This document shows positions 26,524-42,915 of a stretch of 64,000 nt of DNA, piece after piece. The DNA comes from Eutreptiella sp. 'Long Island Sound 2002'. Lineage: Eukaryota; Protista; Euglenida. A program made the translations under genes and the position numbers. Numbering within the stretch: the stretch's first letter is position 1; every line of letters begins with the position of its first letter. The stretch lies in contig OZ038378.1 in the NCBI GenBank assembly GCA_964036045.1, positions 146,506,001 to 146,570,000 on the forward strand, in the 5' to 3' direction. Under the pieces are notes generated by a model that did not search any database, was not told the DNA's origin, and was given only the letters and a program-made list of their open reading frames with translations.

Positions 26524-27410
26524 AGAGAGCGAGAGAGAGAGAGAGAGAGAGAGAGAGAGAGACAGAGAGAGAGAGAGAGAGAGAGAGAGAGAGAGAGAGA
26601 GAGACAGAGAGAGAGAGAGAGAGAGAGAGAGAGAGAGAGAGAGAGAGAGACAGAGAGAGAGAGAGAGAGAGAGAGAGAGAGAGAGAGACAGAGAGAGAGA
26701 GAGAGAGAGAGAGAGAGAGAGAGAGAGAAGAGAGAAGAGAGAGAGAGAGAGAGAAAGAGAGAGAGACTGAGAGAGGAGAGAGAGAGGAGAGAGAGAGAGA
26801 GAGGGAGAGAGAGCGAGAGAGAGAGAGAGAGAGAGAGAGAGAGAGACAGAGAGAGAGAGAGAGAGAGAGAGAGAGAGAGAGAGAGAGACAGAGAGAGAGA
26901 GAGAGAGAGAGAGAGAGAGAGAGAGAAGAGAGAGAGAGAAAGAGAGAGAGACTGAGAGAGAGAGAGAGAGAGAGAGAGAGAAAGAGAGAGAGACTGAGAG
27001 NNNNNNNNNNNNNNNNNNNNNNNNNNNNNNNNNNNNNNNNNNNNNNNNNNNNNNNNNNNNNNNNNNNNNNNNNNNNNNNNNNNNNNNNNNNNNNNNNNNN
27101 NNNNNNNNNNNNNNNNNNNNNNNNNNNNNNNNNNNNNNNNNNNNNNNNNNNNNNNNNNNNNNNNNNNNNNNNNNNNNNNNNNNNNNNNNNNNNNNNNNNN
27201 GGGGGGGAGGAGAGAGAGAGAGAGACAGAGAGAGAGAGAGAGAGAGAGAGACTGAGAGAGAGAGAGAGAGAGAGAGAGACTGAGAGAGAGAGAGAGAGAG
27301 AGAGAGAGAGAGAGAGAGAGAGAGAGAGAGAGAGAGAGAGACTGAGAGAGAGAGAGAGAGGGGGAGAGAGGGAGAGAGAGAGAGAGAGAGAGAGAGAGAG
27401 AGAGAGAGAA
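26524..27410. repeat. (GA)n microsatellite spanning an assembly gap
   Basis: GA run with GACA/GACT/GAAA interruptions on both sides of 200 Ns. Confidence 0.95.
27001..27200. other. Assembly gap (200 N)
   Basis: Run of n; true length unknown. Confidence 1.
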
Positions 27411-30400
27411 CTGGTACCATCCTGGGCGCTCCTAGGGTCTCAGTCCGCGTTCAGGCTGAGATCGGGAGTGCTGTTACAGGGTGGAGTACCGTCAGGCCAT
27501 CCCCGGGTAGCACGGGAGATGGTGGGGCAACCCCTGGCTTCCCTTGTTGCGGGGGTGACCGGTTTATGGGGTGTGTGTCTTAAGTCCCTGGGTGCTACAT
27601 TGGGTACTGGTTTCCAGGCTGTTTGGGTGTTGGTGGGGTGGAGCACGGCCAAGGGCCTGGTTCGTTAAGCACAGCACTTTGGCTGAAGCGGTTCACTGAT
27701 CTGGTGCTGCATGCCTGCCACTCCTTGTGATTTGTTGTCAGGCAACAATGGGGTTCGTGGGGAGTGATCATTCGCGCTATGGTGCAGTTTTAACACATGC
27801 AGCAGTGGGACTTCGAAGGAAGATATGGGGCAACGAGGGTTAGAAAGTCCTCATGGAGGAGATCGAGTTTGGCGTCTTGCTATTTTGCTGCAGTCTGTTT
27901 TCTCGGCTCGCGCCGGTTACAGTCAGCAGAACTTCGACTTGTGCCAGGTGTGTGCAGTGTGGTGTCAAAGGGAGTGGGCAGAATACGGAGGGGACAAGAG
28001 TGAGTGGCACGAGTTCAGAACATTCGCTCCAGCAGGGAGATAAAGGGCCTAGCCGTGACTCAGGTTCGGGGGTCCTCCGGCTTCAGGGCTCAATCCGCGA
28101 CCCCACTCGGTGGGAGTCCTCCGGAGACCACCGGTACACAGGGCGGCTGCGACTCATAATCAGTGGTCCTCCAGCCAGCGTCCGGTGATCTGGTGGTTCA
28201 GAACGGGCTGCGACTTCCCGAGGGAGGTCCTCCAGCCAGTGGCAGGAAGGCACACAGGACGCGAAGGCACACAGGACGCGGCATCTGGACGCCGGATCCC
28301 TTGAACCTTGGGCGACCCCCCCCCTGGTGCCCAAAACAAACACAACGGTCAATCTTTGGCCGAACCAGGGGGGTTAGCTCAGGGGGACGGGGTGATGGTT
28401 CTGCCACTGCCCTCAAGCCAGCGTCGGGTGATCTGGTGGTTCAGGACGGGCTGCGACTTCCCGAGGGAGGTCCTCCAGCCAGTGGCAGGAGGGCACACAG
28501 GAATTCTGAGCCGCGGCATTGTAACTGTGCCCTCCGGCTAGAATTACAGCGTGACCGCGACCCTCTCAGTAGGGTGTCCTCTGGCAGTCGGAAGTCATAA
28601 CGGGACGTGACACTCTTCTCTGCGCTTATCTCAGGATGTCTATCGGCAAGGACGCGTGGAAGAAGCTACAGGCATCAGCAAAGCGGGACAGCCTCAATGG
28701 GTACGACCTGTGGCCGATCGACTCAGTGGCCCGTGGCAAAGACAAGGAGCTCCTGATCACCGGGGTGCACAGGCCATCTGGCGAGAACGTGCTGTCTGTG
28801 CCGATACGGGAAAACCTGATCCATACTCTGGCGTTCTTCTGGTTTTTTATTTCTGGCAACGCCTCCGACACTCAGCGGGCCTGGGTGCAAGATGCAGAGC
28901 CTGATCGATCGGTGTGGAGCATTTACACGCTGCTGCGAGATCTTCAAGCTCAGCTGGACACCATCACCACGGTTGAGGCGGCTGGGAAGTGGCAGGCCAA
29001 CATCATAGAGGAATGCGATTGTCCGGGACTTCGAGGGCAATTGGCGGCTCTACCGTTGGAGGATTTCCTGACGACTTTGGACGCAACGAATCTGAAGGTG
29101 AGCCCACAAACCGACGTAGTACGACTTTGGTACTGACTTTGGTACTTTGGTACAAAGTACTGATGGGGTCAAAGATCGACAGGACCTACTCATCATTGTT
29201 TGAGTATACTAAGGATGGTCAGGGTCTGTTGTCCGTGCTCACGAAATTCTGGAGCAAGAAGACGGCTCTGGAACAGGCGGATATTGAGGACGATTTGATC
29301 TCATGGATAGGAGTGATCAGAGAGGAGTTTGGGGAGAGTGACGCTACCAAGAGCAAGCAAGACACCCTGAGCCGCATGCGATGAAGGCCTGGGCGGTCAG
29401 ATGTGCGGCTGATGGAAAGGATTTGGACTGGTCGAGCTTCATCATGAGTGGATCTATGGAGTTAAATTCTCACGACGACGACGAGCATAGTGAGCTTATG
29501 TCCGTGCTCTTGACTCGGGGGTTGACAAGGCCGTAGTGGGGTCGGAGGCTCAGGAGCAGACGACCAGGAAGATGTTCATCATGGCTGTCACGAAGTGTAA
29601 AACCAACGAAAGGAGGGCAGAGCTAGCAGAGGGTTCGAGAAAGTGGCTGGCCACGTCTCCGAGAGCAAAAAGGCGGCAGAGTCGTTCCTCAAGGCAAGAG
29701 TAGGACAGTATGGGGCAGTGGAGCTGCCCACAGGGAGAGTGCGGGTAGCCCAGCAGGATGGCAGGACAGTCATCAGGGTGGCCTGGATGACCTCGACGGA
29801 GGCATCGTTGACTGATGTGCGGGTATTTATAGAGAAGGTATTCGGTCAGGCAATGGCACTGAACGAAAAGCCTGAGCGACATGGTTGGGGACTACTCAGA
29901 GTACCCCAGTCCCAGTTGGACAAACTACTGGGAGAGGACCCTCAGCGCTCGTTTGTTTCTGATGACCAGAAGGTGGAGCTGGACGTTAGGTCCAGGAACT
30001 CAGCCAAGGGGAAGTATTTCATGGACGCGAATCACTGGGCAGCAATGGCCCTGAGCGAGTAAGTGGTGCGTCGCCGACCGATTCCAGAGCCGGAGATCCA
30101 GGATGACGTCAAGCGAAGAAGAGTGACTGATGGAGCGGGATCCTATCAAAGAGGAACTGGGCGCTGACGCCAGCACTTAAAGGTCGTCTGAGTCAGTTGC
30201 AGCATTAACGAATCGCAGGGTCGGCCCAGGAACAGTGCTCATCAGCGCAGTTTCGCGGCTTCAGGCGATCCACTTCATTATATTTTATTTTCCTATTTTT
30301 ATTTTTCAAGTACACTCAAGAGAGGCAGATCAACATGCACGGTCCGAGTGTTAGAGCACGAGAGTGCAGGCCACACAAAGAAGGCCGCAGACACCCAGTA

Positions 30401-30858
30401 TTTATTTTCTTTAACATTATTTATTTCAGCGGCTTAAGCACAGCGACAGCGGACACCCACCAGCTCAGACGAGCCACTCAGGAGACTCAATGAGTGGCGC
30501 ATTTGGCGGGCGTTTTGGTAGAGTCGCACTGTGCCAGGGCTTGCTCAGGGTGACAGAGGGTGGAGAGAGGGCAATGGAGAGGACTCAGCAAGGTTCATTG
30601 AGACTTCGGGTTGAGGTGGCGGAAGAACAATCAACAATAACAAAGAATTAAATTCTCAACAGAAATCGAGAGCGGGGCACAGGACCACTCAAGGGGCGAA
30701 TGGAGCCAGCACACTTTCTGGGGAGCTAATTTTTTTTTTTAGGAAAAACAGATACGCAATTAAGCACTAAAGGGGACCAATACAGAAGCCCATGCAGCGG
30801 GACTGGGGGTGAGAGCAGGAGCCACTGTAGTCTCGAAAGCAACAGCATCAGGAGCCAG
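27411..30858 (+). mobile_element. Internally deleted LINE copy A1 (5'UTR, broken ORF1, most of the 3' end)
   Basis: Collinear with 33371-36496 and then 41916-42613. It has a 345-bp deletion in ORF1 and a 5.4-kb deletion removing almost all of ORF2, plus small frameshifts and stops. Confidence 0.92.
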
Positions 30859-41962: not shown

Positions 41963-42752
41963 CGAATCGCAGGGTCGGCCCAGGAACAGTGCTCATCAGC
42001 GCAGTTTCGCGGCATCAGGCGATCCACTTCATTATATTTTATTTTCCTACTTTTATTTTTCAAGTACACTCAAGAGAGTCAGATCAACATGCACGGTCCG
42101 AGTGTTAGAGCACGAGAGGGCAGGCCACAACAAAGAAGGCCGCAGACACCCAGTATTTATTTTCTTTAACATTATTTATTTCAGCGGCTTAAGCACAGCG
42201 ACAGCGGACACCCACCAGCTCAGACGAGCCACTCAGGAGACTCAAGGAGTGGCGCATTTGGCGGGCGTTTTGGTAGAGTCGCACTGTGCCAGGGCTTGCT
42301 CAGGGTGACAGAGGGTGGAGAGAGGGCAATGGAGAGGACTCAGCAAGGTTCACTGAGACTTCGGGTTGATGTTGGCGGAAGAACAATCAACAATAACAAA
42401 GAATTAAATTCTCAACAGAAATCGAGAGCGGGGCACAGGACCACTCAAGGGGCGAATGGAGTCAACACACTTTCTGGGGAACTAATTTTTTTTAGGAAAA
42501 ACAGATACGCAATTCGGCACTAAAGGGGGACCAATTCAGGAAGCCCATGCAGCGGGACTGGGGGTGAGAGCAGGAGCCACTGTAGTCTCGAAAGCAACAG
42601 CAACAGGAGCCAGTGGGGGCTCCACCACCAGGACTAAAAGGGCACACCCTACGCAGCCCGGCGGGGCGACTAGGGATTTCAATGACCTCCAGGGGCTCAC
42701 GTGGAGGCCTGCATAAGCAGCGGCCCAGCAAAGACAAGACAAGACAAGACAA

Positions 42753-42915
42753 GAGAGAGAGAGAGAGAGAGAGAGAGAGAGAGAGAGAGAGAGAGAGAGA
42801 GGGAGAGAGGGAGGGAGAGAGAGAGAGAGAGAGAGAGAGAGAGAGAGAGAGAGAGAGAGAGAGAGAGAGAGAGAGAGGGAGGGAGGGAGAGAGAGAGAGA
42901 GAGTGAGAGCGAGAG
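42753..42915. repeat. (GA)n tract at the 3' end of the full-length LINE
   Basis: About 150 bp of GA decaying into flanking sequence. Confidence 0.95.

Follow-up and report, generated by a model that had tools for sequence, protein, structure and literature searches.

We analysed a 64-kb stretch of DNA (the window) from the euglenid Eutreptiella sp. 'Long Island Sound 2002' (contig OZ038378.1, positions 146,506,001 to 146,570,000), which carries two related pieces of a long interspersed element (LINE), here called copy A and copy B, each lying between tracts of (GA)n. The two belong to one family of retrotransposons without long terminal repeats (non-LTR), and copy B is full length. Very probably, this family is autonomous, uses target-primed reverse transcription to enter (GA)n.(TC)n tracts and no other DNA, with GA on the sense strand of the element, and supplies its own templated (GA)n tail. 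The reading is built directly on the anatomy of the element, its protein domains, the invariable GA flanks and orientation of its copies, their variable 5' truncation and the signs of purifying selection in its open reading frames (ORFs).

Junctions of the element with (GA)n tracts

Junctions were surveyed in the window and in ten loci of the family (L001 and L003–L011) from the ENA assembly of the same organism, all chosen because they contain the element; one more locus, L012, was additionally fetched. A word search with ORF2 had returned one 97%-identical and one 49%-identical protein, whose clusters, spread over at least 15 contigs, comprised 44 pieces of ORF2 and 17 of ORF1. Across the 11 loci, all 18 5' junctions (eleven copies full length or nearly so, seven 5'-truncated) lay in (GA)n, as did all 14 3' junctions, and the 3' ends were constant. 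Copies with non-GA 5' flanks, which would speak against targeting, numbered 0/18. The remaining 47 kb of the window, outside the array, contained no GA or TC tract of at least 8 units, yet every one of these 5' and 3' junctions fell in (GA)n, a pattern far beyond chance. Orientation was the same for every copy, with GA on its sense strand, and no poly(A) was found at the 3' ends of the window copies or of the fetched loci, all of which read (GACAA)3–4 and then (GA)n. Uniform orientation and the lack of poly(A) had both been claimed in a first-pass annotation of the window and were borne out there and at the ten further loci. Nine of ten full-length 5' ends read (GA)n-[A]-CTGGTACCATCCTGGGCGC; the copy in L004 lacked the first 11 nt.

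The seven truncated copies began at copy B positions 9045, ~8765 and 4557 (all in L005), 8799 (L007), 5383 (L008), 4798 (L010) and 1012 (L011), each directly preceded by GA. The ten left flanks were ten different unique sequences, and the loci are therefore distinct. At L001, L004, L006, L009, L011 and L012, an upstream GA tract of 74 to ~800 bp was present without any upstream element. Full-length and truncated copies were stacked head to tail in the gap-free contigs L005, L007, L008 and L010, where neighbours within an array differed from one another in truncation point and in sequence (83–99% identity to copy B). A further proposal of the first-pass annotation, targeting of GA/TC repeats, is upheld by GA on both sides of every copy at ten independent loci, including the seven truncated copies and six copies, full length or 5'-truncated, without an upstream element (at five loci and at L012, the ENA version of the window's own locus).

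The GA tracts carry higher-order interruptions that are locus-specific (CT in the window, TA in L012, GGGAGGGAGAGC in L007), which indicates that the tracts also expand locally. Such expansion, together with a ~150-bp block repeated before and after copy B, would fit a non-specific LINE that simply has a GA tail, its arrays and upstream GA having arisen by tandem duplication of, or unequal crossing-over between, element-plus-tail units. We regard this explanation as very improbable. It does not sit with array neighbours that differ in both truncation point and sequence, nor with solitary and 5'-truncated copies at unique loci that still carry upstream GA, and it cannot yield seven different 5' truncation points each adjoining GA. 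As matters stand, it is largely refuted.

Anatomy of the element in the window

The features of the array are collected in Table 1. GA tracts were called with TRF (26524–26993, 27210–27409, 31893–33370 and 42752–42915), and copies A and B were compared by BLAST. From 5' to 3' the element consists of a 5' untranslated region (UTR) of ~1.27 kb, ORF1, a TGA, an in-frame ORF2 and a 3' UTR with a hairpin, (GACAA)3–4 and the (GA)n tail. Self-BLAST of copy B revealed an internal 100-bp duplication only and no LTRs, and every element piece in the window is on the + strand. The first-pass annotation had described 5' ends starting CTGGTAC immediately after (GA)n at 27411 and 33371, and 3' ends of (GACAA)3–4 followed by (GA)n. 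All were present where it had placed them, the 5' ends as (GA)n-A-CTGGTAC and the 3' ends as GCCCAGCAAA(GACAA)3–4 running into (GA)n, with (GACAA)3 at 31879–31893 and (GACAA)4 at 42733–42752. Two corrections are needed: copy A is an internally deleted mosaic and not a shorter intact copy, and ORF2 of copy B contains one premature stop. The first 45 nt of copy B are a variant, absent from nine other full-length copies.

Copy A (27411–31892) consists of copy B segments at 90–99% identity, and its first part is not coding-competent. No GA lies between B-segment 8542–9243 and the 597–1150 piece that follows it. The second part is a copy, truncated at its 5' side, of a distinct short derivative that has lost internal sequence; this derivative occurs with the full 5' end at L010 6776–8376 (95% identical across 1052 nt).

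The first 81 nt of the element in their canonical form (window 27411–27491; L006 8710–8790) fold as a near-perfect hairpin (-46.4 kcal/mol, z -4.8, 0/200 shuffles), of which the variant 5' end of copy B retains the outer stem only. The hairpin may act in 5' end definition, as a promoter or in second-strand priming. A scan of 27380–42800 against Rfam found no ribozyme and no other family. The in-phase CT interruptions, ~50 across 31893–33370 and 26524–27410, give GAGACTGAGA, with the same ACTG as the start of the element, which may be a coincidence amplified by higher-order repeats or a junction trace.

Table 1. Features of the element array, in window coordinates
Feature	Coordinates	Strand	Description
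Upstream (GA)n tract	26524..27410	+	In-phase CA and CT interruptions; contains assembly gap 27001–27200
Copy A, first part	27411..30857	+	Canonical 5' end, then B segments 28–1178, 1242–1763, 2109–3126, 8542–9243; internally deleted
Copy A, second part	30855..31892	+	B about 597–1150 + 3114–3579 + 9139–9379; ends (GACAA)3
(GA)n tract between A and B	31893..33370	+	1.48 kb; ~44 in-phase CT dinucleotides in higher-order repeats
Copy B, full-length element	33371..42752	+	9382 bp; variant first 45 nt
ORF1	34637..36688	+	683 aa from first ATG, ends TGA
ORF2 frame	36689..41962	+	1757 codons; begins right behind the ORF1 TGA, in the same frame
N-terminal Cys motifs of ORF2	36884..37285	+	CxxCG...CxxC, CxxCxR...C; conserved across lineage
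AP-type endonuclease	37574..38308	+	Motifs QE, GDFN, TN, IDH, SH
Reverse transcriptase	38921..40400	+	DWDE (motif A) 39326, motif B 39590, FSDD 39719
RNase H domain	40478..40885	+	D 40481.., E 40598.., D 40670.., H-D 40799.., D 40844..
CCHC motif	41171..41236	+	CxxC...H...C after RNase H, conserved in lineage
3' end of copy B	42686..42752	+	Hairpin CCTCCA...TGGAGG + small CTGC/GCAG hairpin, then (GACAA)4
(GA)n tail of copy B	42752..42915	+	Adjoins unique right flank TGATGCAC...

Domains and coding capacity

ORF1 matched no Pfam family and gave no lead in the atlas. In ORF2, the apurinic/apyrimidinic (AP)-type endonuclease (APE) was the sole domain recognised by Pfam (Exo_endo_phos, E 1.5e-5). 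Among solved structures, a lineage profile of this domain was closest to the human L1 endonuclease (E 2e-11 to 1e-8), and it gave no match to the solved R1Bm and TRAS1 endonucleases at E up to 1. Pfam RVT_1 and RNase_H did not match ORF2 even at E up to 10, and phmmer of ORF2 against the PDB found no match. The lineage profile of the reverse transcriptase (RT) matched the R2 (R2Bm) RT at E 1.2e-13. An AlphaFold (AF2) model of ORF2 residues 745–1480 (window 38921–41128) reached a predicted local distance difference test (pLDDT) of 78.5 and a predicted template modelling score (pTM) of 0.81, and Foldseek with this model retrieved R2 and the human L1 ORF2p (E between 1e-14 and 1e-10). Its RNase H portion matched E. 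coli RNase HI at E 2e-5 (target TM 0.67), with the DEDD-H positions conserved. The N-terminal model, at pLDDT 40, was unusable as a fold.

An exhaustive search with a hidden Markov model (HMM) returned 294 relatives, all ENA/Logan proteins without names, whose alignment shows the RT motifs DWDES.AF, QGDS and FSDDRR, the RNase H pattern D...E...D...H.D and the C-terminal CCHC. The RT and RNase H were thus found only through lineage profiles and the structure model; the lineage is so divergent that standard models miss them. The first-pass annotation had proposed an RNase-H-bearing APE LINE, and each domain bears this out: the APE by Pfam and the L1 endonuclease profile match, the RT by the R2 profile match and Foldseek, and the RNase H by the RNase HI match and the DEDD-H residues. 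By these sequence and model comparisons the element is an APE-type LINE with an AP-endonuclease, a LINE-type RT and an RNase H fold.

In copy B, ORF2 is broken by a single premature TGA (41435–41437), where TGG stands in L003 and L006; the ORFs of these two copies are intact, with an uninterrupted ORF2 of 1757 codons. Pairwise ratios of nonsynonymous to synonymous divergence (dN/dS) among the window copy, L003 and L006 were 0.24–0.30 at dS 0.023–0.030, and all three differences (3/3) between the ORF1 sequences of the window and L012 were silent, at third codon positions. The low dN/dS at low dS and the silent ORF1 changes show recent spread from functional copies, and by these measures the family is young, recently active and under purifying selection.

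The ORF1 stop is TGA (window 36686–36688) in every copy (also in L001 and L003–L012), with ORF2 following directly in frame. This arrangement in all copies suggests that ORF2 is expressed by readthrough of the TGA, as an ORF1–ORF2 fusion.

Reliability of the assembled array

The run of N at 27001–27200 lies wholly inside the upstream GA tract, with the same type of CA/CT interruptions on both of its sides; no coding sequence crosses it, so the reading frame is unaffected. An independent comparison was made with contig ctg8549 of ENA assembly ERZ25074135 (L012), on which the ORF1 protein and the right flank of the window are both present. From 35252 to about 46340 the two showed no difference in element body or unique flank, except for two extra G at ~42806, in the GA tail. 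Between 33416 and 35251 they differed at 14 sites. The first 45 nt of the L012 copy are canonical, unlike the variant of copy B; the GA tract upstream of it measures ~800 bp and is interrupted by TA instead of CT, and its unique left flank is not in the window. The adjacency of A and B in the window is uncorroborated, since L012 matches the window only from 35252 onward. Either one of the assemblies switches element copy within the first 1.9 kb, or both represent recombinant haplotypes.

The window array (copy A, the 1.48-kb GA tract and copy B) might therefore be an assembly join through repeats instead of one physical locus, which we hold to be possible but doubtful. The position of the N gap within the upstream GA tract points that way, as do many element copies located at contig ends and the combination, in L012, of the same right flank and an element identical from 35252 with a differing 5' 1.9 kb, GA tract and left flank. 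Comparable arrays in the gap-free ENA contigs L005, L007, L008 and L010 speak for a physical array, and the ENA contig could equally be the chimera, or both could be real recombinant haplotypes. Insertion into GA is in any case independent of the adjacency of A and B, and arrays are clear at other loci.

Five of the 11 ENA contigs (L001, L003, L004, L006 and L008) end within or beside the element or a GA tract; arrays of element and GA repeatedly break the assembly of this genome. A GA block of ~150–165 bp with shared interruptions occurs at 33040–33207, before copy B, and at 42752–42915, directly after it, with the pattern (GA)~27 GG (GA)3 GGGAGG (GA)~32 GGGAGG... (GTGAGAGCGAGAG). A long target-site duplication, the copying of tail sequence or an effect of assembly might each account for it; no long flanking duplication of this kind was found when looked for at the other loci.

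A sister family in (TG)n

Locus L002 holds a relative whose ORF2 has 47–49% amino-acid identity to that of the GA family. The copy is 5'-truncated near the ORF1/ORF2 boundary, is directly preceded by 660 bp of (TG)n and ends in (AAGCATG)3 and then (TG)n. Conservation between the GA and TG families extends over the ~60 nt that lead into their terminal repeats. In both families these nucleotides form one and the same hairpin, which differs by a single compensatory change (C-G to A-U), and a second small 3' hairpin is also common to both. ORF2 identity between the families was 50–72% in the RT, 24–40% in the N-terminal 250 residues and 24–36% in the C-terminal 150; the N-terminal Cys region lies in the part most divergent between them.

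The same (TG)n array contains, at L002 8970–9055 and 17490–17576, an unrelated 85-nt 3' end (the two 83% alike) that finishes in (TCC)n and twice stands before (TG)n; it belongs to another TG-tailed retroelement, distinct from the sister family. The array includes a (TG)n tract of 2.9 kb (L002 17577–20463), and a gene with a Pfam RVT_1 match (L002 22236–23711), which runs off the locus just beyond the array, may belong to another of its retroelements. A tandem array with a 19-bp C-rich unit (x122) occupies L002 1820–4135.

Proposed mechanism and its alternatives

We propose that the APE would nick the (TC)n strand. The RNA would be held via its 3' hairpin, and its (GA)n/(GACAA)n end would anneal to the nicked (TC)n strand and prime cDNA synthesis. 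The new templated (GA)n tail would lengthen the tract and make it a better target for the next insertion, and full copies and 5'-truncated fragments would accumulate head to tail in the lengthened tract. The endonuclease, the N-terminal zinc (Zn) region and the RNA tail are candidates for what sets specificity.

A stronger role for the RNA can be envisaged, in which the target is chosen mainly via its 3' end: the hairpin would bind the protein, and the family-specific transition repeat and tail would pair with the nicked repeat strand. The contrasting ends of the two families, (GACAA)n(GA)n and (AAGCATG)n(TG)n on a shared hairpin, may be family-specific RNA tails in such RNA-guided reading of the target. 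We consider this unlikely as the main determinant; if true, a change of tail would re-programme the target, which would explain the radiation of families tied to different microsatellites.

Alternatively, the element could seed its own targets without dependence on host microsatellites, making GA tracts by tail-only or extremely 5'-truncated insertions and by reiterative copying of (GACAA)/(GA), with later copies homing to these tails. All 161 GA runs in the 285 kb examined (161/161) were element-associated and on the sense strand of the element; only one TC tract was found in the same DNA, and the ~170 kb of flanks yielded no empty GA tract. The tracts reach 1.5 kb, far beyond ordinary microsatellites. 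Tails at different loci share interruption motifs, such as TGGAGGGAGGAA in L009 and L010; the sharing of such complex motifs between loci argues that tails are copied from template RNA and not freely added. Three or four of the leftmost tracts begin with GACA-like motifs that recall a degenerate 3' end (CAAAGAGAC in L005 and L006), which would suit self-seeding. Their resemblance to the 3' end of the element did not exceed that of shuffled controls, and we rejected the leftmost tracts as starting with a 3'-end relic. Five of the leftmost tracts, moreover, adjoin unrelated unique DNA, and as the loci were selected for holding the element, the absence of empty tracts among them is weak evidence. 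We therefore judge self-seeding as the source of the tracts somewhat unlikely. Probably both kinds of target apply, host microsatellites and the tails of the element itself.

Several points weigh against insertion confined to GA tracts as we propose it. The junction evidence comes from assembled contigs. The ~170 kb of flanks contained no unoccupied tract, so that GA microsatellites already present in the host are putative first targets. Target-site duplications cannot be delimited inside a microsatellite, and the upstream GA block of copy B lies in the uncorroborated part of the assembly. The adjacency of A and B comes from one assembly and conflicts with L012 upstream of 35252, and the evidence from the sister family is a single copy.

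Comparison with known elements

LINEs specific for microsatellites are on record from a small number of lineages among insects, fish and snails (PMC3812793). The fish elements Kibi and Koshi, of the Tx1 clade, insert into (TC)n and (TTC)n; Waldo and Mino, insect elements of the R1 clade, insert into (ACAY)n and (AC)n, and families related to one another have changed from one repeat to another; Dong (R4 clade) targets (TAA)n (PMC3812793). The functional class of the euglenid element is that of the microsatellite-specific APE LINEs Waldo, Mino, Kibi and Koshi, and of Dong in habit; the likeness drawn here is functional. A single, indirect hint of clade is offered by the APE, whose profile lies nearer the L1 endonuclease than those of R1Bm or TRAS1. 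The microsatellite habit itself is known from insect and fish LINEs and is met here in a very divergent protist lineage. A literature search found no description of microsatellite-specific LINEs in Euglena.

Like the euglenid family, Kibi and Koshi are APE LINEs found only inside one microsatellite, in fixed orientation and with the repeat at both ends, and Kibi occupies the same GA/TC dinucleotide. They are animal elements of the Tx1 clade, whereas the present host is a euglenid and its RT is missed by Pfam RVT_1; RNase H, the in-frame ORF1-TGA-ORF2 arrangement and the (GACAA)n transition repeat are features of the euglenid element in this comparison. Waldo and Mino are likewise microsatellite-specific APE LINEs, and their switching of repeats parallels the GA and TG sister families, but they live in another host kingdom and belong to R1, to whose R1Bm and TRAS1 endonucleases the human-L1-like euglenid APE found no match. 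Dong shares a microsatellite target and tail; it uses a restriction-like endonuclease, in place of which the euglenid element has an APE.

The ingi/L1Tc elements of trypanosomatids also reside in euglenozoan hosts and have the order APE-RT-RNase H. Those elements end in poly(A), possess a single long ORF and a C2H2 motif and are not known to be specific for microsatellites, whereas the euglenid element has a GA tail, a CCHC motif and two ORFs split by a TGA. The matches of the word, HMM and profile searches included no trypanosomatid and no named protein, none of these searches gave a sequence link to ingi/L1Tc, and an atlas search with the lineage returned generic APE+RT(+RNase H) clusters only. 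The analysis neither supports nor refutes a kinship with ingi/L1Tc, for which the host phylum and the RNase H domain are the common ground. Zepp of Chlorella, which uses poly(A) tails, and R1/R2, which use a unique rDNA site, form head-to-tail stacks as well, because each new copy lands on the tail or target that its predecessor supplies. The landing pad of the euglenid element differs in being a (GA)n tract that the element itself extends.

Significance for target choice and genome annotation

The present family offers favourable material for studying how microsatellite-specific LINEs recognise their repeat, being young, with intact copies under selection, a ~47%-identical sister on another repeat and a 3' RNA hairpin shared between the two. 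The GA and TG families provide a natural swap contrast for the endonuclease, the N-terminal Zn region and the RNA tail as determinants of the target. For annotation, an assembly of Euglena gracilis was reported to contain 1.5% LINEs and 33% unclassified repeats by automated annotation (PMC11252322), and elements of this kind would explain part of the large unclassified-repeat and tandem-repeat fraction reported there (PMC11252322). Arrays of the element explain contig breaks at these sites, and the long GA tracts of the Eutreptiella genome are largely products or partners of one element.

Other repeats at the loci

In L007, the match of the full-length copy breaks off at element position 3893 (L007 12627), and unrelated DNA follows for >9 kb, which could reflect another insertion or a contig mis-join. 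In the same locus, a called 'gene' of 1236 aa was considered as a member of a sister family and ruled out; it is a tandem array of an 85-bp unit (x42, 98% identical) at L007 1613–5207. Just upstream of the element array in the window, at 25803–25902, lies a tandem array of a 21-bp unit (x4.8). A dispersed repeat of ~240 bp (94–97% identical) occurs in both orientations near several of the loci (window 22023–22258 and 23305–23550; L012 5369–5614; L005 4504–4710; L001 4323–4483) and may be a short interspersed element (SINE) or a miniature inverted-repeat transposable element (MITE).

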